Shown: positions 15,179 to 37,595 of the stretch, one piece after another
Layout of the letters: every line of letters begins with the position of its first letter
How positions within the stretch are numbered: the first letter of the stretch is position 1
Assembly: GCA_002269645.1 (NCBI GenBank)
Contig: NIVC01001776.1
Coordinates: 124,001-188,000 of the forward strand
Direction of reading: 5' to 3'
DNA from: Macrostomum lignano
Lineage: Eukaryota
DNA length: 64,000 nt
Notes under the pieces: generated by a model
Told to the model about the DNA's origin: nothing
Database searches by the model: none
Seen by the model: the letters and a program-made list of their open reading frames with translations, nothing else
Program-made: the position numbers and the translations under genes

Positions 15179-16733
15179 TGAAGTGAAACGAAGGCGCCGT
15201 TAGCAAGAGGATGGGAGAAATCAGCCGACACGCGCGTGATGCGTGAACAAGCATCCAGCCTTGGCAGCAACTCCCCAGATGCACAAGATCTGCATGCCTA
15301 AAAATAGTCCTGATGATCGGCGAGCAAGAAGCCCAGCCATGCGACCCTCGCGTGATGCATGCACAACCTCTGACCGACACTGCCTATTGGGCCTCGAAAT
15401 CCCACTCTCTCTCCCTACTGCTCCTATTCCTCGTTGCTCGCGTACAGTGTGCTAGCTTATAAAATATACTGATTGAAGAGGAAAGATCCTCGCCTGAAGT
15501 TTGAGAATGTGACTCTAGAGATCACAAAGAGAAAGTTACCATCGAGGTCCATTGTTCGTTGTCTTCCTGAACTGTTGGCAGAAGGAAACGATAATATGGG
15601 AAAACCCCATATAATTTTTCGTTTCAATTGGTTCCACTGACCGCGTGAGTCGCCGCTAGACAGAAGTCTCAGACACCATGCAGTTACCGCTCTGCTGCAT
15701 GTCTTCAACAGCCATTCGAATGAATCGAGAACTGAGACTTTCCTGCCTTCAGTAAAGGAAAACTTCGAACTAAACAAGACCAATGGACGAAGATCAAGAA
15801 GCGACGCAGTTTACCCTTCCAAGAAGAAACTTTCGTTGAGAGATCTACACAATCAATTTGGTCAAGACGGTATTTTTCCGACGTCCTATTTAACTGCAAT
15901 GTACCTTCAGCCAGCATCCCGATCTGACTGTCTACCAGACGCTGTTTCAATTTGTCGAGTCTCCGTGTCCAGTCCTATTTGCGTCACTGTTTAGGGCATC
16001 GAAAAGCCCATTCAATTTGTCGAGTTTCCGAGTTCACGTGAATCCCCCTCTCAGATCTGATTAAATAGTCAAGAGGATATGCTGGTACAATTCATCCACT
16101 GTTGTCACAAGTTCACTTTGCCCCTTGACCAAGTTTCGTGTTTCAACAACATCAACTCAACTGCAAGTTACCAAGTGGTACTGCGTATCGCAAGCAAATG
16201 CACAACTGTACGCCATGTCATCATTGCTCCAAGCTTATTTTCAACAGAGCTCGGAGGGCCTCGCTTCCCTGAAAAAAGAGCGACTGAAGTGAAACGAAGG
16301 CGCCGTTAGCAAGAGGATGGGAGAAATCAGCCGACACGCGCGTGATGCGTGAACAAGCATCCAGCCTTGGCAGCAACTCCCCAGATGCACAAGATCTGCA
16401 TGCCTAAAAATAGTCCTGATGATCGGCGAGCAAGAAGCCCAGCCATGCGACCCTCGCGTGATGCATGCACAACCTCTGACCGACACTGCCTATTGGGCCT
16501 CGAAATCCCACTCTCTCTCCCTACTGCTCCTATTCCTCGTTGCTCGCGTACAGTGTGCTAGCTTATAAAATATACTGATTGAAGAGGAAAGATCCTCGCC
16601 TGAAGTTTGAGAATGTGACTCTAGAGATCACACAGAGAAAGTTACCATCGAAGTCCATTGTTCGTTGTCTTCCTGAACTGTTGGCAGAAGGAAACGATAA
16701 TATGGGAAAAACCCATATAAATTTTTCGTTTCA
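15179..16733 (+). mobile_element. Complete non-autonomous LTR retrotransposon (TRIM-like), 1555 bp
   Basis: LTRs 15179-15626 and 16285-16733 (TG...CA, only a few differences); 4-bp TSD ACCC on both sides; PBS-like tggttccactgaccg at 15629; purine tract gaaaaaagag before the 3' LTR; TATA-like tataaaa in the LTR; no gag/pol ORF. Confidence 0.93.
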
Positions 16734-17596: not shown

Positions 17597-18128
17597 TTGG
17601 ACCCTTTCCCATAGAATCCTGGACCATTTCCCATAGAATCTTGGACCCTTTTCCCATGGAATCCTGGACCCTTTCCCATAGAATCCTGGACCCTTTCCCA
17701 TGGAATCCTGGACCCTTTCACATAGAATCCTGGACCCTTTCCCATGGAATCCTGGACCCTTTTCCCATGGAATACTGGACCCTTTCCCATAGAATCCTGG
17801 ACCCTTTCCCATGGAATACTGGACCCTTTCCCATAGAATCCTGGACCCTTTCCCATGGAATCCTGGACCCTTTCACATAGAATCCTGGACCCTTTCCCAT
17901 GGAATCCTGGACCCTTTCACATAAAATCCTGGACCCTTTCCCATGGAATCCTGGACCCTTTTCCAATGGAATCCTGGACCCTTTTCCCATGGAATCCTGG
18001 ACCCTTTTCCAATGAAATCCTGGACCCTTTCCCGTAGAATCCTGGACCCTTTTCCCATGGAATCCTGGACCCTTTTCCCATAGAATCCTGGACCCTTTCC
18101 CATAGAATCCGAAACCCTTTCCCATAGA
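17597..18128. repeat. 21/22-bp minisatellite, ~24 copies
   Basis: Unit gaatcctggacccttt(t)cccat(g/a). Confidence 0.93.
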
Positions 18129-18395
18129 ATTCCCTTTCAAACAGAGCAACATTGATGGGGTGACCATTTTCCTTCAGGTCTCGGAAGAATTCACAAGCTG
18201 ACTTAGCAGCTCCCCAAAGCTGCTCATAGTCCAAGCTGGTATAGGGCGCTACGTACATAAGCGAGAACTCAGGCTGCACAGGGCATCGATACACCATGAC
18301 ATTCAGCAGCAGCAGCAGGAGCAGTTGAACTGGATGCAGTCGGCACAACTTGAGACATCTTCATGAAATTCTGTCTGGTAGGAACGAGGCGCACT

Positions 18396-19330: not shown

Positions 19331-21250
19331 ATGAAGCTAAAAAAACTGATTCCCCGGTGCGGCCCCGGTGCCGCTGATGGCGAGCAGAAACAATTGGAAG
19401 ATGCGCACGAGTCGGATTCAGCCCGCACCGCACGCAAAGCCATGGGGCTGCTCTACGCGGGGCAGTTCTCCCGTTTTGCCGACGCGCTGCAGCAAAATGC
19501 TGAGCTGCTCCGCCACAGTGGATGCAAGTTCTGTGACTACCTGGTCGCCGATGGCAACGCAAACGACTGTCCAAAGCTGTCGCCGTTCTGCCTCGTGCTG
19601 CTCAGTCGGGACGACGAGCTGGCCAGCCGAGCCGTCGAGCTGGTCGACAGCCTCGGTCTGTGGGACCGCGTCCGCTGCGCCCTGTTCCTCCTGGTGGACT
19701 TTTGCTGCTCGAGTCAGGCCTGCTCCGCTGACGAGGCGCAGCTCGCTCGGTTCTTCGTCAGACTGTCGCGCCGGCATCCGGACCCGTGCGCTCGGCTGCT
19801 GAGCGAGGAGCCGACGGCCGACTGCCTGACACCGCTGGAGTACGCGGCGGCCAGGGACTGCTTTCACCTGGCGACAGCGTTCGCCAATGCGCCCGGATAC
19901 CTGATCAGAGAGCGGGAGCATCCGACCGACCCGAGCCTGCTGGTCGAGGAGGTCGACCTCAGCCTCTACTCCAGCGACGGGGACCGCTTTCTCAAGTCAC
20001 CGTTCCTGCAGTTTCTGAAGTCTTCGCAGACTGCGGTTGGGGGAGTTATTCCAGCGAAGTTGATCTGTTTCTATCACAGCCCGGTTGCGCAGGCCTATTT
20101 TCTCAGCGTTGCCCACCTGAAACAGACCTTGCCGGTGGCCTTCATAAGTCTGTTCATCTACATTTTGATTTACTTTTCACTGTTGAGCACGATGACAGTT
20201 CGAATTTTCACGGCGGGCACATTCAACTCCAGCGTGCAGGTGTTCATTCCGAGCGGCGGGAACTCGAACCAGTCCTACCTGCAGGGCATCTCACCGTCTG
20301 TTGTCGCCGCTTTCAAATACGTGTTCTACGTGCGAGTCGCGTTCCAAATCTTCTTCTTGCTAATCTGGCTCTCTTGGATCGTAGCCCGCGTTGTTGATGC
20401 GCACTTTCAGCTCCAGGTAATGCGAACTCGGTCCAAGTTTCTAACCTGGCTTGCAGATGCCGTCTCGATGCGAGGTTGTCTGGTGATGGAATTCTTTGGG
20501 ATTCTGTTCAACATGCTGCAGGTTTGTATGATTTTCATGGAGCTTTACATCTTCAGCGATTCCGGCAGCTACTTTAAGCAAGATGGACGCCTGTTTGTCG
20601 AAGCGACTCGTCTTCAAGTCGCAGTAGCCTTGAACTACTACTTTACTTGCATGTTGGAACTTTTCTTTGTATCCAACATGGCCGGTCACTACCAAGTGTT
20701 CCTAAACTTACTTTTTTGCATGAGTGTGTCCATGAAGCTGGTGCTCTTAACTGTTGTGCCAGTAACTCTGGTTTGCTCAACGTTGCTTCTCAGCCAGCCT
20801 TTTATCGAGTGCTCCAACTACTCACTGGTCTGCGTCATAGAGTACCTTGGCCGGTCTTTCCGCTACGCATTCAGCTTTGCTAGCTTTCCCGGCATCGGCG
20901 ACTACGTTGCGCTGTGGCCGCAGGTCATAGTGTTCCTGCTCGTGGCCGTGTTCATCCTGAACTTCGGCATCGCCCTACTGACCCAGCAGATCAGCGTGCT
21001 GCACGAGAACTTCGAACTCCGCCGAGACATAGTGGGAACTGTGTGGTCGCAGCAGTACGCCACGCTGGGCTTTCTGCTGCGCAGACGCTTTCGGACTAGG
21101 AGGCAGAAGCCTGTGCTGCTGAGCAGAGCGCTGCCCCGGTTCGGGACCGAGTGCGGCAAAACCGATGGTCACTGTGGTGCCACCACCTGTTGCATACAGA
21201 ACTGTTTGAGGCACGCGTTTAAAAAAGTTGCTACCAACTGTGAACTTTGA
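19331..21250 (+). CDS. Divergent TRP channel (TRPV-like), 639 aa, single exon
   Basis: Ankyrin-like LTPLEYAAARDCFHLA, EVDLSLY linker, multiple hydrophobic segments, pore-like FASFPGIGDY (cf. TRPV GMGD), S6 FILNFGIALL (cf. LNMLIA), TRP-box-like VWSQQYAT. Confidence 0.78.
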   Translation: MKLKKLIPRCGPGAADGEQKQLEDAHESDSARTARKAMGLLYAGQFSRFADALQQNAELLRHSGCKFCDYLVADGNANDCPKLSPFCLVLLSRDDELASRAVELVDSLGLWDRVRCALFLLVDFCCSSQACSADEAQLARFFVRLSRRHPDPCARLLSEEPTADCLTPLEYAAARDCFHLATAFANAPGYLIREREHPTDPSLLVEEVDLSLYSSDGDRFLKSPFLQFLKSSQTAVGGVIPAKLICFYHSPVAQAYFLSVAHLKQTLPVAFISLFIYILIYFSLLSTMTVRIFTAGTFNSSVQVFIPSGGNSNQSYLQGISPSVVAAFKYVFYVRVAFQIFFLLIWLSWIVARVVDAHFQLQVMRTRSKFLTWLADAVSMRGCLVMEFFGILFNMLQVCMIFMELYIFSDSGSYFKQDGRLFVEATRLQVAVALNYYFTCMLELFFVSNMAGHYQVFLNLLFCMSVSMKLVLLTVVPVTLVCSTLLLSQPFIECSNYSLVCVIEYLGRSFRYAFSFASFPGIGDYVALWPQVIVFLLVAVFILNFGIALLTQQISVLHENFELRRDIVGTVWSQQYATLGFLLRRRFRTRRQKPVLLSRALPRFGTECGKTDGHCGATTCCIQNCLRHAFKKVATNCEL

Positions 21251-22097
21251 GCTAGACTTTTGACTAGAACCATCGGGATATTCCAGCATGAGAATATGTA
21301 CTCCCACTCCCGTTGGGTCCTAGAGTAAACGCCGTGGTAAAATTCACACAAGGCGACGCCAAAGATGGTTCCCGTTGACGAGGTCGTCGTAGGCACGAAA
21401 GTTGTTTTGGGTGGTTGTCGTTGCTGGTGAACTTGTCGGCTTGATTGTTTGTTTGATTGCTGGTTGTTGGTTGTTGGCGCAGTCGTTGTTACGTCATTGA
21501 AACCAGTCTTTGCTTGATCTAGCAACACGCAAATAGTACAAGTTATCAATACTTTGTAATTTATTTTACATCAGTCGCATGATTCGATGGCTCAATCGAT
21601 AGCGGTACATAAAATTAAATTGTATATAAAATTTAATGAGCCCACACATTTGATTTTAATCTCATGATCTATTTACAAATTTACTGTTTAAAACTTCGGT
21701 AACATCTTGAGTAAACCACTAATTAGAGCCGTGTTTGGGCAATTTAAAATAAATAAATATTGAAGTGTTTATACTTTATTTAAATTTTTCCGACGATTTC
21801 ACCTGCTACATAGTATCAATAACAGACCGTTTAAGGAAGCATAAATTAATTTGAAAAGTATCGGGCTGTACAAACGGTTCACTCTGTCCTCATGATGCTG
21901 AACAACAAATAAAAAACATAATGAGCAATGGGGCAAGTCCCTCAATTAAGGCAGCATCTCTTCATCAAATTGTCCACCAAGGCAAGACACGCACTGAAGT
22001 TAAATGAAATTTTAAAAAATGATATAAATTTGGACAGTTTATCGCAAAATATACCATGTTACATGTTGATACATGTTTGAAAAAACGAAGCAACGCT

Positions 22098-25000
22098 TTA
22101 TGAAAAACAAGCTGCTAGGAGTACAGTGAGTGAAGGCAACAGCAGGGACAGCGCTAGGCTACATCTGCATTGGGAAGCTTCTCGAGGCCAGATGACGTTG
22201 TTCGTTGTTGTTGTCAGAGTTGTTGGCGTCGTTATCGTCGGAGTGGTTGTTGTTGAAGTGGTTGTTGTGGGGTTGGTTGTTGTTGGACTGGTTGTTGTTG
22301 AAGTGGTCGTTGTTGGAGTGGTTTTTGTCGGAGCGAGCGTTGTTGGAGTGGTTGTTGTTGGAGTGGTTGTTGTTGGCGTGGTTGTTGTTGGCGTGGTTGT
22401 TGTTGGCGTGGTTGGTGTTGGAGTGGTTGTTGTTGGCGTGGTTGTTGTTGGCGTGGTTGTTGTTGGCGTGGTTGTTATTGGCGTGGTTGTTGTTGGCGTG
22501 GTTGTTGTTGGAGCGAGAGTTGTTGGAGTGGTTGTTGTTGGAGCGAGAGTTGTTGGAGTGGTTGTTGTTGGAGCGAGAGTTGTTGGAGTGGTTGTTGTTG
22601 GAGTGGATGTTGTTGGAGCGAGCGATGTTGGAGTGGTTGTTGTTTGCGAGGTTGTTGTTGGTGTGGTTGTTGTTGGCGTGGTTGTTATTGGCGTGGTTGT
22701 TGTTGGAGTGGTTGTTGTTGGAGCGAGAGTTGTTGGAGTGGTTGTTGTTGGAGTGGATGTTGTTGGAGCGAGCGATGTTGGAGTGGTTGTTGTTTGCAAG
22801 GTTGTTGTTGGTGTGGTTGTTATTGGCGTGGCTGTTGTTGGCGTGGTTGTTGTTGGAGCGAGAGTTGTTGGAGTGGTTGTTGTTGGAGTGGTTGGTGTTG
22901 GAGTGGTTGGTGTTGGAGCGAGAGTTGTTGGAGTGGTTGTTGTTGGAGCGAGCGATGTTGGAGTGGTTGTTGTTGGCGTGGATGTTGTTGGCGTGGATGT
23001 TGTCGGAGCGAGCGTTGTTGGAGTGGTTGTTGTTGGCGTGGTTGTTGTCGGAGCGAGAGTTGTTGGCGTGGTTGTTGTCGGAGCGAGCGTTGTTGGCGTG
23101 GTTGTTGTCGGAGCGAGAGTTGTTGGCGTGGTTGTTGTTGGAGTTGTTGTTGTTGGCGTGGTTGTTGTTGATGTCGAAGTCGCAGGAACTGCAATTAAAA
23201 CAATGTTATAATCCGCTGTTGAGTAAACTCGCGGCAGAGAACAAATACTCAGTCAATAGAATTACACTAGCAGTTAAAAAAACTCACAAGGCGGATGGTT
23301 GGTCATTGAGCCGCCCGTTCCAGCCTGCAGGCAGTTCGGCGGAGCGAAGCCGGGACTGCAGAAGCACTGGCCGCTCTGCGTGCACCAGCCGTTGCCATTG
23401 CAGTTCGGGCAGCGCGTGGTGTTGATGGCCACGCACTGGGAGTCGACGCACATCTGGAAAATAGTTGCGAGTTGGGAATTGAAATATCAGAACTCAGTCA
23501 AGCCCTTCCCGCTGACCCCCCCCCCCGAGAAAGGGCACGAAAATCGGTACTGGGGCTCATGTGATTCACGCCTGAAATATTTCAGCCCCGAAGCAACCCG
23601 GCTAAGTGCGAAAAATTTAATAAGTGCACTCTATTAAATACCGGAGCACCCACCCGTCCGGTTCCGCATTCGGCGCCATTGGGAACGAGCCCAGGGTCCC
23701 GGTAGCCGGAGCTGCGCAAGTCCAGCTGCATAAAAGCGGCGATCACGTTAGTGGAGTTCACGCTGCCCTCGAACACCTTGGCGTCGGCGAGGTTGGCGCC
23801 TTGCCACACCGGAATTGGGTCGCCTGAGGCGATATTTGACGTGCAATACAGCAATCCGCAGCGTTGGTTTCTGGGGGGACGGAGCAGTTTGAGTTGGTCA
23901 TTTCACGGAGAAGTTGAATTAAGGATTAATAAAATGGGATTTAGGATAGACGAATAGGATTAATAAAAATAATATACCAATTGGGATTGATGATTCTGGG
24001 TTTCAGATTGATGATTCTGGGGTTTGGGATGGATGATTCTGGGGTTTGGGATGGATGATTCTGGGGTTTGGGATTGATGATTCTGGGGTTTGGGATTGAT
24101 GATTCTGGGGTTTGGGATTGATGATTCTGGGGTTTGGGATTGATGATTCTGGGGTTTGGGATTGATGATTCTGGGGTTTGGGATTGATGATTCTGGGGTT
24201 TGGGATTGATGACTCTGTGGTTTAGGATGGATGATTCTGGGGTTTGGGATTGATGATTCTGTGGTTTAGGATAGATGATTCTGGGGTTTGGGATTGATGA
24301 TTCTGTGGTTTAGGATGGATGATTCTGGGGTTTGGGATTGATGATTCTGGGGTTTGGGATTGATGATTCTGTGGTTTAGGATGGATGATTCTGGGGTTTG
24401 GGATTGATGATTCTGTGGTTTAGGATGGATGATTCTGGGGTTTGGGATTGATGATTCTGGGGTTTGGGATTGATGATTTTGGGGTTTGGGATTGATGATT
24501 CTGGGGTTTGGGATTGATGATTCTGTGGTTTAGGATGGATGATTCTGGGGTTTGGGATTGATGATTCTGGGGTTTGGGATTGATGATTTTGGGGTTTGGG
24601 ATTGATGATTCCGGGGTTTGGGATTGATGATTTTGGGATTTTGAGTTGATGAATTTGGGATTTGCCACCTCCCCATCTCGATCCCTAGCTCACTCGGGAC
24701 TGCAGCCGGTGTAGTTGTACGCGAGCGGGCTGATTCCGGTCATGCTGTAGTCGCAGTAGCCCAGCTGCGATGCCTGGGTGGTGGCCTCGGAATAAAAGGC
24801 GGGGGCGGCCCAAAAATCCGAGGCGTTGAACATCACGGAGCAGCGGGTGTTGCGGTCCGAGCACCGGCCGTTGAAGCAGTAGGCCTTGAGGGTCAGTGGG
24901 TCAACTGCGGTTCTTGAGTCAAAGGCCCATGATTCAGAGGGTCACAGATTTGTTTACTGATTAACCATAGGGTTACGGAATTATTGAGTCAATGGGTCAT

Positions 25001-28000
25001 TGGATCAACAGGCCAATGAGTCAATGGGTCAATGGGTCAATAGGTCATTGGGTCAATGGTTTATTGGGTCAATAAGTCATTGGTTCAGTAAGTCATTGGG
25101 TCATTGGGTCAATAAGTCATTGGTTCAGTAAGTCATTGGGTCATTGGGTCAATAAGTAATTGGGTCAATAAGTCATTGGTTCATTTGGTCAATGTTTCAT
25201 TGGGTCATTGGATCATTGGGTCAATGGGTCAATGGGTCAGTGGGTCATTGGGTCAATGTTTCATTGGGTCATTGGATCATTGGGTCAATGGGTCAATGGG
25301 TCAGTGGGTCATTGGGTCAATGTTTCATTGGGTCATTGGATCATTGGGTCAATGGGTCAATGGGTCAGTGGGTCATTGGGTCATTGGGTCATTGGGTCAT
25401 TGGTCAATGGGTCATTGGTCAATGGGTCAATGGGTCAATGGGTCATTGGATCATTGGATCAGTGGGTCATTGGGTCAATAAGTCATTGGGTCAATGGGTC
25501 ATTGGTTCAATAAGTCATTGGGTCATTGGGTCAATAAGTCTTTGGGTCATTGGGTCAATGGGTCAGTGGGTCATTGGGTCATTGGGTCATTGGGTCAATA
25601 GGTCAGTGGGTCATTGAGTCATTTGGTCATTGGTCCCAATATCTCCTCACCTGTCCGCTGAGGCACTCTGATCCGTCAATCATGAAGTCATCAAATTCCG
25701 GGCACCATTCGCTGGTCCCGTTACAGTACTCCTCAAGGTCGCAGGCTCGCTTCCTTGGCCGACATACGACGCCCTGCGACTTCAGGCTGCAGGTGGTGAG
25801 GTTGCAGCACTGGCCTGAGGCGCAGGCGGCCCCGCTGGCCAATTTGCAGGTGCTTGGGTTGCAACAGGTGTTGTTGCACCACTGCGGAGCGTGAGATGAG
25901 CTATGAAATTTCATCATACACATACAATATCCTTATCCTACGATATCCCATTCGTATTATATCCCTATCCTACGATATCCCATTCCTGTAATATCCCTAC
26001 CCTACAATATCCCTACCCTACAATATCCCTATCCTACAATATCCCTATCCTACGATATCCCATTCCTATAATATCCCTATCCTACAATATCCCTATCCTA
26101 TAATATCCCTATCCTACAATATCCCTATCCTACAATATCCCTATCCTACAATATCCCAATCCTACAATATCCCTATCCTACAATATCCCTATCCTACAAT
26201 ATCCCTATCCTACAATTCCCTATCCTACAATATCTCTATCCTACAATATCCCTATCCTACAATTCCCTATCCTACAATATCCCTATCCTACAATATCCCT
26301 ATCCTACAATTCCCTATCCTACAATATCTCTATCCTACAATATCCCTATCCTACAATATCCCTATCCTACAATTCCCTATCCTACAATATCTCTATCCTA
26401 CAATATCCCTATCCTACAATATCCCTATCCTACAATTCCCTATCCTACAATATCTCTATCCTACAATATCCCTATCCTACAATTCCCTATCCTACAATAT
26501 CTCTATCCTACAATATCCCTATCCTACAATATCCCTATCCTACAACATCCCTATCCTACAGCATACCTCCCTACAATATCCTTATACACCCTGATTCCCA
26601 CCCGCTGCACCTGAGGCGGTCCGCAGTCGCAGTCCTCCCCGGGCTCGACAATCCGGTTGCCGCACGAGCTCCTGGTGGCGGCCAGGTTCGCCACCGAAGG
26701 CGGGTCGGACATGCAGTATCCGAGCCCGTTGTCCACGCTGAAGTCCTGGTAGCGGAACACGGAGCAGTTGGAGAATCGCATCGGGTTAATCCTGGGATTT
26801 GATTGGACAGGCGACACGCGAGTTAAATCTGCGTTCGTGTACTGAAAATCACGTGCTGGGTCAAGGGGTGCTGAGTCAATGGGTGCTGGGTCAAGAGTTG
26901 CTGGGTCAAGGGGTGCTGGGTCAAGGAGTGCTGGGTCAAGGAGTGCTGGGTCAAGGGTCGCTGTGTCAAGGGCTGCTGGGTCAAGGGGTGCTGGATCAAG
27001 GGGTGCTGGGTCAAGGGGTGCTGGATCAAGGGGTGCTGGGTCAAGGTGTGCTGGATCAAGGGGTGCTGGGTCAAGGGGTCGCTAGGTCAATAATCAAAGA
27101 TAAAAATGTTGGGTCAAGGGGTCGCTGGGTCAATAATCCTAGATAAAGGTGCTGGTTCAATAATCCTAGATGAAGATGCTGGGTCAAGGGGTCGCTGGAT
27201 CAATAATCCTAGATGAAGATGCTGGGTCAAGGGGTCGCTAGGTCAAGGGGTCGCTGGATCAATAATCCTAGATGAAGATGCTGGGTCAAGGGGCTGCTGG
27301 GTCAATAATCCTAGATGAAGATGCTGGGTCAAGGGGCTGCTGGGTCAATAATCCTAGATGAAGATGCTGGGTCAAGGGGCTGCTGGGTTAATAATCCTAG
27401 ATGAAGATGCTGGGTCAGGATGTTGAATCGCAGGGCTACTCATGACTGCGGCTCACTCGGTGCCCACAGCGGCCATGATGCAGCCCTGTCTGTCCGGGCA
27501 GTGGCAGCCTCTTTCGTCCTCGTCGTGGTTCATGCCGAGGTTGTGCCCGAGTTCGTGGGCCACCGTGATGGCCACCCCGATTGCGTTGGCGTCCCGGTCC
27601 TGCGAGGAGGGAGTTTGGCCGTTTTGATTTCGGTTTTCAAAATATTTAACAGTTTCATGAGATATCTATGGGATTTGTCTTATATCTATGAGACTTGCCT
27701 ATATGCATTGAGACTCGGGAAGCTATGAGATTCGCCTAAAAACGAGAATGTCTCACCGAATTGACTCCGCCACCGAAAGCGGAGCTGCACAGCTTGCCCA
27801 GGTGCGCCAAGCCGACATCCGAGCCGGTCATTTTCAGTCCGCTAAAAAAGTTTTTTTGCGTTTAAACAAACTTTCTTGATGAAGGCTGGGTGTCATCTTT
27901 AGGATACAATTGACAGAATGGGACAGTATTGAGCATTTTCTTTTTAGGGCGCCTTGTATTTAAATGAAGGGCGCCGTTTCTACTGTAAGGATGGCGCTAA

Positions 28001-31000
28001 AGCTACTGTAAGGATGGCGCCAAAGCTACTGCAAGGATGGCGCCAAAGCTACTGTAAGGGTGGCGCTAAAGCTACTGTAAGGGTGGCGCCAAAGCTACTG
28101 TAAGGATGGCGCCAAAGCTACTGCAAGGTGGCGCCAAAGCTACTGTAAGGGTGGCGCCAAAGCTACTGTAAGGGTGGCGCCAAAGCTACTGTAAGGATGG
28201 CGCTAAAGCTACTGTAAGGATGGCGCCAAAGCTACTGCAAGGTGGCGCCAAAGCTACTGTATGGGTGGCGCCAAAGCTACTGTAAGGGTGGCGCCAAAGC
28301 TACTGTAAGGATGGCGCTAAAGCTACTGTAAGGGTGGCGCTAAAGCTACTGTAAGGATGGCGCCAAAGCTACTGCAAGGTGGCGCCAAAGCTACTGTAAG
28401 GGTGGCGCCAAAGCTACTGTAAGGATGGCGCTAAAGCTACTGTAAGGGTGGCGCCAAAGCTACTGTAAGGATGGCGCCAAAGCTACTGTAAGGGTGGCGC
28501 CAAAGCTACTGTAAGGATGGCGCCAAAGCTACTGTAAGGGTGGTGCTAAAGCTACTGTAAGGATGGCGCCAAAGATACTGTAAGGGTGGCGCCAAAGCTA
28601 CTGTAAGGATGGCGCCAAAGCTACTGTAAGGGTGGCGCCAAAGCTACTGTAAGGATGGCGCCAAAGCTACTGTAAGGGTGGTGCTAAAGCTACTGTAAGG
28701 ATGGCGCCAAAGATACTGTAAGGATGGCGCCAAAGCTACTGTAAGGATGGCGCCAAAGCTACTGTACGGTGGCGCAAAAGCTACTGTAAGGATGGCGCCA
28801 AAGCTACTGTAAGGATGGCGCCAAAGCTACTGTAAGGTGGCGCTAAAGCTACTGTAGGGATGGCGCCAAAGCTACTGTAAGGATGGCGCCAAAGATACTG
28901 TAAGGATGGCGCCAAAGCTAGTGTAAGGATGGCGCCAAAGCTACTGTAAGGATGGCGCCAAAGCTACTGTAAGGTGGCGCTAAAGCTACTGTAAGGATGG
29001 CGCCAAAGCTACTGTAAGGATGGCGCCAAAGCTACTGTAAGGTGGCGCTAAAGCTACTGTAAGGATGGCGCCAAAGCTACTGTAAGGATGGCGCCAAAGC
29101 TACTGTAAGGTGGCGCTAAAGCTACTGTAAGGATGGCGCCAAAGCTACTGTAAGGATGGCGCCAAAGATACTGTAAGGATGGCGCCAAAGCTACTGTAAG
29201 GATGGCGCCAAAGCTACTGTAAGGTGGCGCTAAAGCTACTGTAAGGATGGCGCCAAAGCTACTGTAAGGATGGCGCCAAAGATACTGTAAGGATGGCGCC
29301 AAAGCTAGTGTAAGGATGGCGCCAAAGCTACTGTAAGGATGGCGCCAAAGCTACTGTAAGGTGGCGCTAAAGCTACTGTAAGGATGGCGCCAAAGCTACT
29401 GTAAGGATGGCGCCAAAGCTACTGTAAGGTGGCGCTAAAGCTACTGTAAGGATGGCGCTAAAGCTACTGTAAGGATGGCGCTAAAGTTACTGTAAGGATG
29501 GCGCTAAAGTTACTGCCTTTCTACCTGACAAGATGAGCGGCGCTGTGCGGCCGCGAGTTCAGATGGTGCATCTTGTAGTTCATGAAGTTGTCCAGCATCT
29601 CGGTGGAGTTCACCCCGGCAGGACTGCTGGCCGTGCTGGTGACATACGGGTCCGTCCGCCACACCTCAGTGTACACCGTGACGACGTTCACGCCGATTTG
29701 CTTGTAGAACTGCGCGAGTGGTGCGAGGGTTTGGGTAAGATTTTTTGGGGAAGACAGAGGGGGAGACAGAGGGGGAGACAGAGCGGGAGACAGAGAGGGA
29801 GACAGAGGGGGAGACAGAGAGGGAGACAGAGGGGGAGACAGAGAGGAGACAGAGGGGAGACAGAGGGGGAGACAGAGCGGGAGACAGAGGGGGAGACAGA
29901 GGGGGAGACAGAGCGGGAGACAGAGAGGGAGACAGAGGGGGAGACAAAGGGGGAGACGGAGGGGGAGACGGAGGGGGAGACAAAGGGGGAGACAGAGGGG
30001 AGACAGAGGGGGAGACAAAGGGGGAGACAGAGGGGGAGACAGAGGGGGAGACAGAGGGGGAGACAGAGGGGAAGACAGAGGGGAAGACAGAGGGGAAGAC
30101 AGAGCGGGAGACAGAGGGGAGACAGAGGGGGAGACAGAGCGGGAGACAGAGAGGGAGACAGAGGGGGAGACAAAGGGGGAGACGGAGGGGGAGACAGAGG
30201 GGAGACAAAGGGGGAGACAAAGGGGGAGACAGAGCGGGAGACAGAGGGGAGACAGAGGGGGAGACAGAGGGGGAGACAGAGGGGAGACAGAGGGGGAGAC
30301 AAAGGGGGAGACAGAGGGGGAGACAGAGGGGGAGACAGAGGGGGAGACAGAGGGGGAGACAGAGGGGGAGACAAGGGGGAGAGAGAGGGGAGACAGAGGG
30401 GAGACAGAGGGGGAGACCGAGGGGAGACAGAGGGGAGACAGAGGGGAGACAGAGGGGGAGACAGAGGGGGGACAGAGGGGGAGACAGAGGGGGAGACAGA
30501 GAGGGAGACAGAGGGAAGACAGAGGGGAGACAGAGGGAGAGACAGAGGGGGAGACAGAGGTAGGCAAAAGAGAGGAAGCCAGAAGAAGGGATTAGAAGCA
30601 AAAGCCGTAAATCAAAGGCTCACGCGGATGCTTACGCAGACACACACACACACACACTTGCAAGGGTGTACAGCGGCATTGACTTTCACATCGATAAGCA
30701 GTGGGCGCACTCTGAACTCCAAGAATCCAGGGAAAGACAATTTGCTCACAGCATTGACATAGTTGCCGATCTCCCACAGCCGGCTCACAGCGGCGGCCGA
30801 ATCGTTGCCCTGCTGCGAGTACTGAAATCGGCAGGTTGATTTCATAACTACCCCCTTGCCAACTAAAACTCAAAAAATGAAAAAGTGCAAGTACTCATAA
30901 ATGCATCGATCCGCTTACAAAGTACTGATCTCCAACCAGGATAAGTCTGATGTACTTTCGATCCGTCTCCGCGGCGCCGGAGTTCGTGTCCAGCAGCACC

Positions 31001-32919
31001 GCCCGCCGCAGTCTGGATTGCGGCGACGGCCACAGCGGCGAGGAGGCGACGTCCGGGTGTCCAGAGCCGGAGGCGAGGCCGCACTTCCGAGGCTGCGACG
31101 GGATGACGGAGGCTGAGAACAGACTCGAGCTGGTTGGCTGGGGCTGCATCTCGTACATCCGGCTGCCGTACTGGAAGCTGCCGCTGAAATTCACATCCCG
31201 ATTGGAGTTTGGCTTCAGTTTTGAATCCCAGAGTGACATCTGCATAGCAACAACGCCTCGCTTACCTGAGTGAGTTGCCCCTCTGCACTGCCGCTGCCAT
31301 CTGCGACTCGTCAGTGCTGAGGCTGCCCTGGTAGAAGCAGATCTCAGTGTCCGGCTTCGCGTCTTCGTGCAGAAACTCTCTGAAAATTTTTGAGACAGTC
31401 AGTCAGTCAGTCAGTCAGTCAGTCAGTCAGTCAGTCAGTCAGTCAGTCAGTCAGTCAGTCAGTCAGTCAGTCAGTCAGTCAGTCAGTCAGTCAGTCAGTC
31501 AGTCAGTCAGTCAGTCAGTCAGTCAGTCAGTCAGTCAGTCAGTCAGTCAGTCAGTCAGTCAGTCAGTCAGTCAGTCAGTCAGTCAGTCAGTCAGTCAGTC
31601 AGTCAGTCAGTCAGTCAGTCAGTCAGTCAGTCAGTCAGTCAGTCAGTCAGTCAGTCAGTCAGTCAGTCAGTCAGTCAGTCAGTCAGTCAGTCAGTCAGTC
31701 AGTCAGTCAGTCAGTCAGTCAGTCAGTCAGTCAGTCAGTCAGTCAGTCAGTCAGTCAGTCAGTCAGTCAGTCAGTCAGTCAGTCAGTCAGTCAGTCAGTC
31801 AGTCAGTCAGTCAGTCAGTCAGTCAGTCAGTCAGTCAGTCAGTCAGTCAGTCAGTCAGTCAGTCAGTCAGTCAGTCAGTCAGTCAGTCAGTCAGTCAGTC
31901 AGTCAGTCAGTCAGTCAGTCAGTCAGTCAGTCAGTCAGTCAGTCAGTCAGTCAGTCAGTCAGTCAGCCAGTTAGTCAGTCAGTCAGTCAGTCAGTCAGTC
32001 AGTCAGTCAGTCAGTCAGTCAGTCAGTCAGTCAGTCAGTCAGTCAGTCAGTCAGTCAGTCAGTCAGTCAGTCAGTCAGTCAGTCAGTCAGTCAGTCAGTC
32101 AGTCAGTCAGTCAGTCAGTCAGTCAGTCAGTCAGTCAGCCAGTAGTCAGTCAGTCAGTCAGTCAGTCAGTCAGTCAGTCAGTCAGTCAGTCAGTCAGTCA
32201 GTCAGTCAGTCAGTCAGTCAGTCAGTCAGTCAGTCAGTCAGTCAGTCAGTCAGTCAGTCAGTCAGTCAGTCAGCCAGTTAGTCAGTCAGTCAGTCAGTCA
32301 GTCAGTCAGTCAGTCAGTCAGTCAGTCAGTCAGTCAGTCAGTCAGTCAGTCAGTCAGTCAGTCAGTCAGTCAGTCAGTCAGTCAGTCAGTCAGTCAGTCA
32401 GTCAGTCAGTCAGTCAGTCAGTCAGTCAGCCAGCCAGTTAGTCAGTCAGTCAGTCAGTCAGTCAGTCAGTCAGTCAGTCAGTCAGTCAGTCAGTCAGTCA
32501 GTCAGTCAGTCAGTCAGTCAGTCAGTCAGTCAGTCAGTCAGTCAGTCAGCCAGTCAGTCAGTCAGTCAGTCAGTCAGCCAGTCAGTCAGTCAGTCAGTCA
32601 GTCAGTCACCTGGATGACTCAGTCAGAGTCAGCTCCACAGGCGACTCCTCCCCAGCAACTGAGACGCGCAGCTGTCGCCGCTCCGGACACGGGGCTCTTA
32701 GCTGACTGGGTTGGAATTTCAACGAGTCTAAAAATTGCGATGCAGTTTAACAGTGGAAAATTCCGTACAAAACAAATTGCTTGAGTCTGACAAAATTCAA
32801 AAATAGTTTTCATCACTCTTACAGTCAGCTGTCGGCCTGGATGCAGCTTGAAGATGTTGCTGGGACAGCAGCACCAGCAGCTGAAGCAGAAACAGTCGCC
32901 AACAGTTCCTGTGGCGCAT
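22098..32919 (-). CDS. ADAM: ADAM metalloprotease-disintegrin (~1051 aa) with Thr/Pro mucin stalk and hydrophobic GPI-signal-like C-terminus
   Basis: 14 phase-consistent exons: 32823-32919, 32610-32727, 31266-31379, 30919-31183, 30750-30821, 29525-29709, 27757-27841, 27457-27599, 26611-26791, 25651-25881, 24694-24884, 23654-23870, 23288-23453, 22098-23188. Signal peptide, prodomain (CFYQG, RKCG switch, RLRR furin site), [12 protein letters not shown] + CIM Met-turn, disintegrin ([22 protein letters not shown]), Cys-rich, [13 protein letters not shown] repeats. Confidence 0.93.
23985..24660. repeat. 22-bp G-rich minisatellite, ~30 copies (ADAM intron 11)
   Basis: Unit gggattgatgattctggggttt. 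Confidence 0.95.
24985..25635. repeat. Degenerate 8-bp GGGTCA-containing array (ADAM intron 10)
   Basis: gggtcatt / gggtcaat units. Confidence 0.92.
25925..26585. repeat. 16-bp minisatellite (ADAM intron 9)
   Basis: Unit tatccctatcctacaa. Confidence 0.95.
26855..27420. repeat. 15-bp minisatellite grading into a longer composite unit (ADAM intron 8)
   Basis: gggtgctgggtcaag, then aataatcctagatgaagatgctgggtcaagggg composites. Confidence 0.9.
27985..29515. repeat. 23-bp minisatellite, ~66 copies (ADAM intron 6)
   Basis: Unit aaagctactgtaaggatggcgcc. Confidence 0.96.
29750..30562. repeat. Purine-rich ~10-12 bp degenerate repeat (ADAM intron 5)
   Basis: gggggagacaga variants. Confidence 0.95.
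31396..32608. repeat. (CAGT)n microsatellite, ~300 units (ADAM intron 2)
   Basis: Near-perfect run abutting the splice donor at 32609. Confidence 0.99.
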
Positions 32920-34196: not shown

Positions 34197-35625
34197 CGAC
34201 TCACTGATGCAGTGGGTGGGGAGACAGGGGTCACTGATGCATCTGGGGATGGGAAGGCATGGGTCACTGATGCATCTGGGGATGGGAAGGCAGGGGTCAC
34301 TGATGCAACTGGGGAGGGGAAGGCAGGGTTCACTGATGCATCTGAGGATGGGGAGACAGGGGTCACTGGTGCATCTGGGAAGGGGGAGACAGGGGTCACT
34401 GATGCAACTGGGGAAGGGAAGGCAGGGGTCACTGATGCATCTGGGGAAGGGAAGGCAGGGGTCACTGGTGCAACTGGGAAGGGAAGGCAGGGGTCACTGA
34501 TGCATGTGGGGATGGGGAGGCAGGGGTCACTGGTGCAACTGGGAAGGGGGAGGCAGGGGTCACTGATGCATGTGGGGATGGGGAGGCAGGGGTCACTGGT
34601 GCAACTGGGAAGGGCAGGCAGGGGTCACAGTGAAGTATCTGGGGAGGGGAAGGCAGGGGTCACTAGTGCAACTGAGAAGGGGGAGACAGGGGTCTCTGGT
34701 GCATCTGGGAAGGGGGAGGCAGGGGTCACTGATGCATCTGGGGATGGGGAGACAGGGGTCACAGTGAAGTATCTGGGGAGGGGAAGGCAGGGGTCACTGG
34801 TGCAACTGAGAAGGGGGAGACAGGGGTCTCTGGTGCATCTGGGAAGGGGGAGACAGGGGTCACTGGTGCAACTGGGAAGGGGGAGGCAGGGGTCACAGTG
34901 AAGTAACTGGGGAGGGGAAGGCAGGGGTAGGGGTCACTGGTGCAACTGGGAAGGGGGAGACAGGGGTCACTGGTGCAACTGGGAAGGGGGAGACAGGGGT
35001 CACTGGTGCAACTGGGAAGGGGGAGGCAGGGGTCACTGATGCATCTGGGAAGGGGGAGGCAGGGATCACTGATGCATGTGGGGATGGGGAGGCAGGGGTC
35101 ACAGTGAAGTATCTGGGGAGGGGAAGGCAGGGGTCACTGGTGCAACTGAGAAGGGGGAGACAGGGGTCTCTGGTGCATCTGGGAAGGGGGAGACAGGGGT
35201 CACTGGTGCAACTGGGAAGGGGGAGGCAGGGGTCACAGTGAAGTAACTGGGGAGGGGAAGGCAGGGGTAGGGGTCACTGGTGCAACTGGGAAGGGGGAGA
35301 CAGGGGTCACTGGTGCAACTGGGAAGGGGGAGACAGGGGTCACTGGTGCAACTGGGAAGGGGGAGGCAGGGGTCACTGATGCATCTGGGAAGGGGGAGGC
35401 AGGGATCACTGATGCATGTGGGGATGGGGAGGCAGGGGTCACTGGTGCAACTGGGAAGGGGGAGGCAGGGGTCACAGTGAAGGATCTGGGGAGGGGAAGG
35501 CAGGGGTCACTGGTGCAACTGGGAAGGGGGAGACAGGGGTCACTGGTGCAACTGGGAAGGGGGAGGCAGGGGTCACTGATGCATCTGGGGATGGGGAGGC
35601 AGGGGTCACAGTGAAGTATCTGGAT
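34197..35625. repeat. 33-bp G-rich minisatellite with an internal 340-bp duplication
   Basis: Unit like caggggtcactggtgcaactgggaagggggagg; 34761-35100 is repeated at 35101-35440. Confidence 0.93.
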
Positions 35626-35807: not shown

Positions 35808-36425
35808 TCAATCAGTGACGATGTCATCAAGCGGCTGGTCAGAGTCGCCGGTGGGCACGGAGTCGACCAGCTGGTCGCTGAAGGCGATGGCCACGGCGGC
35901 GCAGGCGGGGTTGGCGGCGCGGGCCCTGGCCAGGTAGCGGTCATAGTAGCCCATGCCCCGGCCCAGCCGCGCCCCGTCAGCTTGGCAGAATGCCAGGCCT
36001 GGTACTATAATGAGATCCAGCCCGCCGTTCTCCAGGCCCTCCTCCCTGGCGGGCGACCCGGGTTCGAGTCCCGGCTGCCGGATGCCCCACTTGGTGACTG
36101 GCAGCGAGGCCAGGTCCTCTCGGCCGGACACAGCCAGCATCTCCATGCCGCCGCCGCGGCTGTACCTCGGCACGAACAGCCGGCGGCCGCTATTGAAAAT
36201 GTCGGCCACAATGCCGGCCGTGTCGACCTCCTCCGGCATGCTCAGGTAGACGCTGATCCGCTTAGCCGAGCGGTACCGATCGCTGGCCAGCAGCTTCTGG
36301 ACAATGATGCCGGATTTTGAGCTGCGCTGCTCAGCTGATAGGGCGGCCAGGCGCGACTTGATGAGGCTGCGAAGCTGCGATTTGGCAGCTTTCACTGCGG
36401 CGGCAGCTGTTGGGCTGGAGGACAT
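35808..36425 (-). CDS. MTHFS: 5-formyltetrahydrofolate cyclo-ligase (methenyltetrahydrofolate synthetase), 205 aa
   Basis: KSQLR, ISVYLSMPEEVDT, LFVPRY, TKWGIRQP, LDLIIVPGLAF, RLGRGMGYYDRYL, DQPLDDIV family motifs. Confidence 0.96.
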   Translation of the reverse strand: MSSSPTAAAAVKAAKSQLRSLIKSRLAALSAEQRSSKSGIIVQKLLASDRYRSAKRISVYLSMPEEVDTAGIVADIFNSGRRLFVPRYSRGGGMEMLAVSGREDLASLPVTKWGIRQPGLEPGSPAREEGLENGGLDLIIVPGLAFCQADGARLGRGMGYYDRYLARARAANPACAAVAIAFSDQLVDSVPTGDSDQPLDDIVTD

Positions 36426-36529
36426 TGGTTGGCTGCGGAGGGGTTGCGCAACTCTAGTGGAAATTCCGTGGGCTGCCCGGAAGATTTTGAAGGGTGAGAA
36501 TTCAAAAATCCTGCAGTTTCCTAAATACC

Positions 36530-37595
36530 TGCCTCTGAGAAGGCGCCACTGTCTCTTAAGTGAGCACCCCTTGTTTCTTAGGCGAGCACCCCCTGTCTCT
36601 TAGGCGAGCACCCCCTGTCTCTTAAGTGAGCCTCAACTGTCTCTTAGGTGAGCACCACTTGTCTCTTAGGTGAGCCTCTCAACTGTCTCTTAGGTGAGCA
36701 CCACTTGTCTTTTAGGTGAGCCTCAACTGTCTCTTAGGTGAGCACCACTTGTCTTTTAGGTGAGCCTCAACTGTCTCTTAGGTGAGCACCACTTGTCTTT
36801 TAGGTGAGCCTCAACTGTCTCTTAGGTGAGCACCACTTGTCTTTTAGGTGAGCCTCAACTGTTTCTTAGGTGAGCACCCCTGTCTCATAGGTGAGCTTCA
36901 ACTGTCTCTTAAGTGAGCACCACTTGTCTTTTAGGTGAGCACCACTTGTCTTTTAGGTGAGCACCACTTGTCTTTTAGGTGAGCACCACTTGTCTTTTAG
37001 GTGAGCCTCAACTGTTTCTTAGGTGAGCACCCCTGTCTCTTAGGCGAGCACCCCTTGTTTCTTAGGTGAGCACCCCTTGTTTCTTAGGTTAGCACCCCTT
37101 GTTTCTTAGGCGAGCACCCCTTGTTTCTTAGGTGAGCACCCCTTGTTTCTTAGGTGAGCACCCCTTGTTTCTTAGGTGAGCACCCCTTGTTTCTTAGGTG
37201 AGCACCCCTTGTTTCTTAGGTGAGCACCTCTTGTTTCTTAGTTGAGCACCCCTTGTTTCTTAGGCGAGCACCCCTTGTTTCTTAGGTGAGCACCCCTGTC
37301 TCATAGGTGAGCCTCAACTGTCTCTTAGGTGAGCCCCCTGTCTCTTTGGCGAGCCCCACTTGTCTCTTAGGTGAGCCCCCTGTCTCTTAGGCGAGCCCCA
37401 CTTGTCTCTTAGGTGAGCCTCAACTGTCTCTTAGGTGAGCCCCCCTGTCTCTTAGGCGAGCTCCACTTGTCTCTTAGGTGAGCCTCAACTGTCTCTTAGG
37501 TGAGCCTCAACTGTCTCTTAGGTGAGCCTCAACTGTCTCTTAGGCGAGCCCCACTTGTCTCTTAGGTGAGCCTCAACTGTCTCTTAGGTGAGCAC
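36530..37595. repeat. 23-24 bp minisatellite upstream of MTHFS
   Basis: tgtctcttaggtgagcacccct / ...gagcctcaac variants. Confidence 0.94.

Follow-up and report, generated by a model that had tools for sequence, protein, structure and literature searches.

A meltrin-type ADAM gene of Macrostomum lignano whose last exon encodes a minisatellite-derived stalk and a plausible GPI-attachment signal

The ADAMs are type-I membrane proteases that cut their substrates near the membrane, and control over where they travel, when they become active and which substrates they choose is commonly attributed to their transmembrane (TM) helix and cytoplasmic tail. The gene considered here, BOX15_Mlig011654g2 of Macrostomum lignano, encodes an ADAM that ends in another way. 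It lies on a 64,000-nucleotide stretch of contig NIVC01001776.1 (assembly Mlig_3_7), called the window below. A single last exon takes the place of the normal linker, TM helix and tail, and encodes a long Thr/Pro stalk followed by a plausible signal of the kind used for attachment of glycosylphosphatidylinositol (GPI).

Among the metzincins, GPI anchors are carried by MT4-MMP (MMP17), MT6-MMP (MMP25), ZMP-1 of C. elegans and GP63 of Leishmania. These enzymes have the design proposed for the window gene, a zinc protease held by lipid on the outer leaflet in a family with TM-anchored paralogues, but they belong to families M10 and M8 rather than M12B, have no disintegrin, cysteine-rich or EGF-like domains and stand on short stalks rather than on a mucin repeat of 139-328 amino acids (aa). 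The closest functional analogy would be the pair of GPI-anchored MT-MMPs beside their TM-anchored relatives. As for the stalk, CD55/DAF combines a Ser/Thr stalk with a GPI anchor, and fractalkine (CX3CL1) is a chemokine on a mucin stalk. In both, a head domain is raised by an O-glycosylated Ser/Thr/Pro-rich stalk, as in the layout of the window gene, but their heads are not proteases, they stand on much shorter stalks and they are unrelated to it in sequence.

Within the ADAMs, the canonical form has a TM helix and a cytoplasmic tail of 40-250 aa, soluble splice forms being the exceptions (PMC4885070). ADAM9-S, ADAM12-S and ADAM28s resemble the window gene in having neither TM helix nor tail, but they reach that state through alternative splicing and have no terminal hydrophobic signal. 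ADAMTS7/12 likewise carry a mucin/proteoglycan module, but it is internal and the proteins are secreted (PMC4885070). Full-text literature searches found no description of a natural GPI-anchored ADAM beyond one loose phrase, given without an example, in a review that also mentions MMP-25 as potentially GPI-anchored (PMC5187769); phrase searches for GPI-anchored ADAMs yield papers on GP63, ZMP-1 and RECK. The sequence of the window gene is already public as a hypothetical protein, and its architecture is undescribed for ADAMs.

The gene runs from 32919 to 22098 of the window on the minus strand in 14 exons, with every intron GT-AG and every junction phase-consistent. The assembled model of 1051 aa matches GenBank PAA64179.1 (BOX15_Mlig011654g2, Macrostomum lignano, "hypothetical protein") residue for residue; the window, eukaryotic DNA with 48% GC, is a verbatim piece of its contig, and the annotated coding sequence (CDS) of PAA64179.1 is exactly 32919..22098. 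The GenBank models of Mlig_3_7 derive from a genome-guided RNA-sequencing (RNA-seq) assembly that used StringTie, TACO and a de novo transcriptome, with open reading frames (ORFs) called by TransDecoder and gene ends placed by trans-splicing and poly(A) reads (PMC5730564). The junction of exons 13 and 14 and the stop codon are therefore those of a transcript-derived model, and BOX15_Mlig011654g2 is a real, transcribed meltrin-type ADAM metalloprotease gene. A preliminary description of this DNA had placed a phase-correct last exon after the EGF exon and had proposed RNA-seq as a check on the 23288/23188 junction and the 3' end. Both points hold: the stretch 23188..22098 (minus strand) is exon 14, of 1091 nt, the donor at 23288 is in phase 1 so that T+TT gives Phe689, and the RNA-seq-derived GenBank model has the same junction and the same stop codon. 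The features of the gene, all on the minus strand, are as follows.

32823..32919, minus: exon 1, ATG and signal peptide; donor GTAAGA, phase 1; start of the annotated PAA64179.1 CDS
32610..32727, minus: exon 2, prodomain; phase-consistent, model identical to the GenBank protein
31266..31379, minus: exon 3, prodomain (ICFYQGS)
30919..31183, minus: exon 4, Cys switch PRKC144GL, furin-like site RLRR/AV and start of the catalytic domain; C144 and R167 columns at least 90% conserved
30750..30821, minus: exon 5, catalytic domain
29525..29709, minus: exon 6, catalytic domain
27757..27841, minus: exon 7, catalytic domain
27457..27599, minus: exon 8, zinc site and Met-turn (CIM); Pfam Reprolysin E=2.4e-47, invariant residues
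26611..26791, minus: exon 9, end of the catalytic domain and start of the disintegrin domain
25651..25881, minus: exon 10, disintegrin domain; Pfam Disintegrin E=6e-21
24694..24884, minus: exon 11, cysteine-rich domain; Pfam ADAM_CR E=1e-12
23654..23870, minus: exon 12, cysteine-rich domain
23288..23453, minus: exon 13, EGF-like domain, with a phase-1 donor GTGAGT
23189..23287, minus: intron 13, 99 nt, GT...TTTTAATTGCAG; same junction in two other genomic copies and in annotated P0001, P0121 and P0284
22203..23186, minus: exon 14, stalk of 328 aa, residues 690-1017; from composition and the tandem array 22219..23170
22194..22202, minus: N1018-N1019-V1020, candidate omega, omega+1 and omega+2 residues; same C-terminal distance as SNASAS of a paralogue
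22161..22193, minus: polar/charged spacer of 11 residues
22101..22160, minus: marginally hydrophobic C-terminal segment of 20 residues, to the last residue; from mean hydropathy and insertion energy
22098..22100, minus: stop codon TAA, where the annotated CDS ends

By its sequence, the ectodomain is that of a complete, catalytically intact and apparently active ADAM. The signal peptide, called at motif level, combines a basic n-region with a Leu-rich h-region of 11 residues, and the Cys switch PRKC144GL and the convertase site RLRR/AV of the prodomain are in place. The prodomain assignment rests on these motifs, since the Pfam propeptide PF01562 was matched neither in a scan of the query without exons 1-2 nor among the precomputed Macrostomum protein domains listed. 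Pfam matches cover the remainder, with Reprolysin PF01421 at 2.4e-47 over the whole profile, Disintegrin PF00200 at 6e-21 and ADAM_CR PF08516 at 1e-12. In an alignment of 103 ADAMs, made up of the window protein and 102 homologues, H327, E328, H331, H337, D338 and M354 fall in invariant columns, as do the cysteines of the disintegrin, cysteine-rich and EGF domains, with all conserved cysteines present through C674, while C144 of the Cys switch and R167 of RLRR stand in columns conserved at 90% or more. The zinc motif and Met-turn, reported earlier to be intact, are so: both lie in exon 8, with the zinc ligands and M354 invariant across the alignment. The best matches outside Macrostomum, at 30-38% identity, are vertebrate ADAM9/12/15/19/8, nematode ADM-2 and Lingula ADAM9/12-like proteins, which identifies the protein at sequence level as a meltrin-type ADAM. 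Members of this group (vertebrate ADAM9/12/19/15/8, nematode ADM-2 and the protein of the brachiopod Lingula) have the same order of ectodomain modules and the zinc motif HEXGHNLGXXHD, but in them a short linker leads from the ectodomain to a TM helix and a tail of 40-250 aa, in contrast to the 328-aa Thr/Pro stalk and terminal hydrophobic peptide of the window gene. The protein is thus an ADAM by its catalytic, disintegrin, cysteine-rich and EGF domains and not by its anchoring module.

What is missing at the end of the protein can be stated directly. It stops 0-1 residues past a marginally hydrophobic 19-20-mer and has no TM helix with a cytoplasmic tail of the 40-250 aa found in canonical ADAMs. 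A tblastn search of the 64-kb window with the C-terminal parts of P0003, P0004, Lingula P0134 and P0139 found no TM/cytoplasmic exon (best E 0.88), and an ectodomain query run as a positive control recovers exons at 1e-8 to 4e-29. Downstream lies a convergent gene, a plus-strand ORF of 639 aa at 19331..21250. Some 850 bp separate its end from the ADAM stop codon, space for no more than a 3' untranslated region; AATAAA signals lie at 21780 and 21565. One candidate extra exon, the minus-strand ORF 21169..21549 (TTTAPTTNN), was rejected, as it runs into the 3' end of that convergent gene and does not resemble the tails of ADAMs. The absence of a cytoplasmic tail noted in the preliminary description is accordingly upheld by an annotated model that stops at the same codon and by the lack of a detectable TM/cytoplasmic exon in 64 kb, and the onward splicing to such an exon that would have overturned it is not seen in the transcript-derived annotation. 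So too is the view of this ADAM as non-canonical in architecture, an intact ADAM in which a mucin-like stalk and a terminal hydrophobic peptide stand where the TM-plus-cytoplasmic module would be. As a separate observation, the convergent 639-aa ORF appears intronless, has many hydrophobic segments and no Pfam match, and is an annotated gene in all three genomic copies of the locus.

The stalk consists of 212 Thr, 63 Pro and 13 Ser in 328 aa (65% Thr, 19% Pro). Tandem Repeats Finder (TRF) places a 15-bp unit at 22219..23170 in 63.5 copies, with 78% matches, 0% indels and a score of 1085, and within the repeat DNA 150 bp are duplicated exactly as a higher-order unit. In the protein the array reads as 63 Pro-initiated units, 26 of them PTTTT and 11 PTTLA. 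The pentapeptide repeats attributed earlier to a coding 15-bp minisatellite are thereby recovered, as is the Thr/Pro stalk itself, although the length of about 340 residues first given for it comes down to 328 (residues 690-1017). The length of the ORF was rejected as evidence of coding, and since four of six frames are stop-free across the array an open frame by itself proves nothing here. Exon 14 is taken as coding instead from the splice phase, the tail, the frame kept in three genomic copies and the identity to PAA64179.1. The same gene carries minisatellites in seven of its 13 introns, all the long ones included:

23981-24664: intronic minisatellite, 22 bp x31
25020-25633: intronic minisatellite, 8 bp x77
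25923-26585: intronic minisatellite, 16 bp x42
26853-27417: intronic minisatellite, 15 and 43 bp
27980-29515: intronic minisatellite, 23 bp x67
29747-30560: intronic minisatellite, 12 bp x69
31396-32608: intronic minisatellite, (CAGT)x303, spanning 1.2 kb

These intronic arrays differ in length among the three genomic copies. Tandem repeats make up 15% of the M. lignano genome (PMC5730564), and given this and the minisatellites in the introns the mutational source of the stalk is unremarkable; the notable point is that the minisatellite lies in frame within a coding exon.

Three near-identical copies of the locus are present in Mlig_3_7, in a genome where duplicated blocks of at least 95% identity amount to 180 Mb (PMC5730564). 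They have the acceptor, the tail (apart from one Cys/Arg difference) and the stop in common, their 3' flanks are 98.8-99.9% identical with the same convergent gene next to each, and their stalks measure 328, 219 and 139 aa, every one in frame. The sister-copy protein P0001 (PAA65530.1) is annotated at 790 aa with a stalk of only about 66 aa, while its own contig NIVC01001641.1 (L001, 19285-20048) holds an uninterrupted ORF with a 254-aa last exon and a 219-aa stalk. As the product is shorter than the ORF of its contig, the P0001 model has probably collapsed the repeat through spurious gaps or introns in the minisatellite.

The preliminary description had suggested looking for paralogues with the same type of tail, and one exists. 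Paralogue B (cluster P0002/P0124, also P0123; BOX15_Mlig000885g2/g3, Mlig000688g2) is the closest paralogue, at 54% identity; the splice junction that follows its EGF exon has the same position, and the last exon beyond it reads DNTTAPTSPVATTTTVATRSNASASRVANWLTTALPLFLLSLLLKQQSALVWQL-stop. It is like the window gene in having the intron after the EGF exon, a Thr-rich linker, a hydrophobic C-terminus and no cytoplasmic tail, and unlike it in that the linker is about 17 aa without a minisatellite, the omega region is a canonical SNASAS and the hydrophobic stretch is weaker and broken by KQQ. SNASAS offers four acceptable omega positions, 32-35 residues from the C-terminus, the same distance as N-N-V. 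From this common last-exon layout it follows that the tail-less end predates the split between the two genes and that the long stalk is a later expansion of the linker. Paralogues P0003 (51%) and P0004 (45%) instead have classical TM helices, then RRCR/RR and tails of 79-126 aa. In part of the PMC7336406 data, paralogue B (Mlig000885.g3 / Mlig000688.g2; L002) is flagged germline_FACS and one copy is classed as Testis by positional RNA-seq. A testis-class paralogue recalls the testis-specific ADAMs of mammals. The best homologue matches included no orthologue from another Macrostomum species. A further M. lignano entry, P0132 (UniRef A0A1I8JAK4, 1338 aa), is an older gene model named 'DNA-directed DNA polymerase' that includes the C-terminal half of the window ADAM (residues 400-689, at 83% identity) and is probably chimeric.

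How does the C-terminus compare with a GPI signal? The signal pattern comprises a polar flexible stretch, a small omega residue, a non-Pro omega+1 and a small omega+2, after which come a hydrophilic spacer of 8-12 residues and 15-20 hydrophobic residues (NetGPI preprint; PMC10491789), a pattern that has been termed "remarkably vague" (PMC10491789). The tail was scored by these published spacing rules only. Its 34 aa consist of N-N-V, an 11-residue polar spacer and 20 marginally hydrophobic residues to the stop, so that with omega at N1018 the spacer is 11 residues, the hydrophobic stretch 20 and the preceding sequence the Thr-rich stalk, a spacing that fits the rules. The hydrophobic 19-mer has a mean Kyte-Doolittle value of 2.14, compared with 2.74 and 3.13 for the paralogue TM helices; the segment has a central Pro, and there are Arg residues on its luminal side and no Lys or Arg after it. 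Its summed insertion energy is +0.44 kcal/mol as against -2.3 (P0003) and -4.5 (P0004) for the TM helices, figures obtained with biological-scale values (Hessa 2005) summed without position weighting. Efficient GPI signals have been reported to need marginal hydrophobicity (Galian 2012, as it appears among the references of PMC10491789), and the weak insertion energy relative to the paralogue helices means that the terminal segment matches this requirement. GPI anchoring of the window ADAM is, on these sequence features, a plausible and modestly favoured reading.

Together with the unweighted energy sum, several points weigh against it. Val at omega+2 is sub-optimal, away from the G/A/S optimum, and N-N-V is the sole omega candidate at the right distance; A1026 and S1027 have poor omega+2 residues and would leave spacers of only 1-2 residues, and a propeptide of 33 residues is at the long end of the range. 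The stalk is probably O-glycosylated, judging by composition only. Its length is not tightly constrained, as the 2.4-fold difference between near-identical copies indicates, and given the minisatellites in the introns of the same gene its expansion may be neutral. No expression data for Mlig011654 or Mlig012082 were found in a literature search by ID, nor in PMC5816591, PMC12732829 and PMC12896417.

If the terminal 20 residues are not a GPI signal they could be a permanent type-I TM helix, making the protein a tail-less, TM-anchored ADAM on a mucin stalk. Twenty residues with a mean hydropathy of 2.14 are enough to span a bilayer, and the non-canonical omega site, with its V at omega+2 and with QRRC replacing QCRC in two copies, points the same way. 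Such a helix would nevertheless be an odd one, with a central Pro and several Ser/Thr, an insertion energy of about +0.4 kcal/mol that is far weaker than in the paralogues, no basic stop-transfer residues behind it and luminal Arg residues that contravene the positive-inside rule. The closest paralogue, moreover, carries SNASAS, a textbook omega region, equally far from its C-terminus; a TM anchor is for these reasons unlikely. More doubtful is the suggestion that the protein in effect leaves the cell as a soluble, mucin-like component of mucus or matrix with protease activity, its hydrophobic end poorly processed, cleaved off or serving as a transient anchor. Long mucin domains are typical of secreted mucus components and the weak omega site could reduce the efficiency of anchoring, but unprocessed GPI-type signals usually lead to retention and degradation in the endoplasmic reticulum (ER). 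Soluble ADAM forms are known as splice variants of ADAM9, 12 and 28 (PMC4885070), yet here the tail is common to three copies and is kept in a function-like form in a paralogue only 54% identical, which would be unexpected of a dispensable end.

It is highly improbable, finally, that the gene end is an artefact of annotation or assembly, with transcripts that run on to a TM and cytoplasmic exon or with a repeat of the wrong length. Tandem repeats are hard to assemble, and the P0001 product that falls short of its own genomic ORF implies that repeats were mishandled in annotation. The junction, tail and stop are, however, common to three independent contigs and three annotated models, paralogue B has the same layout, the window holds no TM/cytoplasmic homologue and the convergent gene follows at about 850 bp in all three loci, so that only the exact number of repeat copies is exposed to assembly error.

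The rarity of the arrangement was gauged in a pool of 274 homologues, made up of the top 120 from 90% clustering, the top 150 representatives from 50% clustering (library of 1.84 billion proteins) and cluster members; 257 of the 274 reach the end of the EGF domain. Among these 257, a TM helix with a tail of at least 40 aa is found in 209 and a tail of 13-39 aa in 13, while 28 lack a strong hydrophobic segment (fragments, soluble forms and paralogue B) and in 7 such a segment closes the protein. The pairing of a terminal hydrophobic segment with a stalk of at least 80 aa that contains a 40-aa window of at least 70% Ser/Thr is confined in this pool to the window gene and its copies. Similar uncharacterised predictions occur in P0221 (ENA), where a stalk of about 95 aa, rich in S/T/A, leads to a hydrophobic end, in Owenia fusiformis CAH1796798.1, in Helobdella robusta XP_009009316.1 and in a transcript of the glass sponge Vazella pourtalesii. 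Like the window gene, they have an ADAM ectodomain, a Ser/Thr-rich linker (short in some, long in others), a hydrophobic C-terminal end and no tail, but at 31-35% identity they are not orthologues, none has a tandem-repeat stalk as long, and some may be mispredictions. The Owenia protein (P0264) also carries a Ly6/uPAR-like Cys domain and a GPI-type signal in its C-terminal 190 aa, after the EGF-like domain; the prediction reflects either a genuine domain fusion or the merging of gene models. Tentatively, tail-less lipid-anchored ADAMs could form an overlooked, recurrent class in invertebrates (flatworm, annelids and sponge), of which the Macrostomum gene would be an extreme form, an active sheddase-type protease raised tens of nanometres off the membrane and acting in trans from a length-polymorphic stalk. 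Its targets would then be partner cells, matrix or mucus rather than membrane proteins beside it in cis, and a part in reproduction is possible, in line with the paralogue enriched in testis.

For GPI anchoring of the window protein, the following course can be proposed. The signal peptide would direct entry into the ER, a furin-like convertase would cut at RLRR to release the Cys-switch prodomain, and GPI transamidase would cleave near N1018 and attach the lipid anchor, placing an active protease in the outer leaflet without regulation through a cytoplasmic tail. Dense O-GalNAc glycosylation would stiffen the stalk and thus keep it extended, with a reach at about 0.25 nm per residue of roughly 35-80 nm for 139-328 aa. 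A protease so placed would stand too far off the bilayer to shed juxtamembrane substrates in cis, as ADAM10/17 typically do, and, as the juxtamembrane stalks of proteins on its own cell could hardly be cleaved, proteins of the matrix, mucus or neighbouring cells would be likelier targets. The picture of a protease held far above the membrane survives in this form for the long stalk of the window copy, but not as a fixed property, the copies being 328, 219 and 139 aa. Release might occur by phospholipase or other cleavage of the anchor, or by cleavage of the stalk. The stalk itself would have arisen from a short Thr-rich linker enlarged through slippage of the 15-bp minisatellite, with a length still variable between copies.

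A natural ADAM that has neither TM helix nor tail and is carried on a long mucin stalk would offer a direct way to test what those modules are needed for. It would also have a counterpart in the MT-MMPs, which are divided into TM-anchored and GPI-anchored forms. The prediction is testable, since transgenesis and RNA interference exist for M. lignano. The locus also shows a coding minisatellite turning a 17-aa linker into a stalk of 139-328 aa with the frame kept. The stakes are moderate, in that one uncharacterised gene family in a non-mainstream model is concerned and GPI anchoring is a prediction.

Elsewhere in the window, the upstream neighbour at 35811-36599 (minus strand) is a 5-formyltetrahydrofolate cyclo-ligase gene (Pfam PF01812, 1e-42), followed at 34218-35609 by an intergenic 33-bp/340-bp tandem array. 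Downstream of the convergent gene, a 22-bp/111-bp tandem array at 17598-18130 is open in several minus-strand frames (KGPGFHGKGSRIPWERVQDSMG). Two identical minus-strand ORFs of 76 aa (HTVREQRGIGAVGRESG), at about 15224-15451 and 16330-16557, lie some 1.1 kb apart and thus point to a local tandem duplication or a repeated element.

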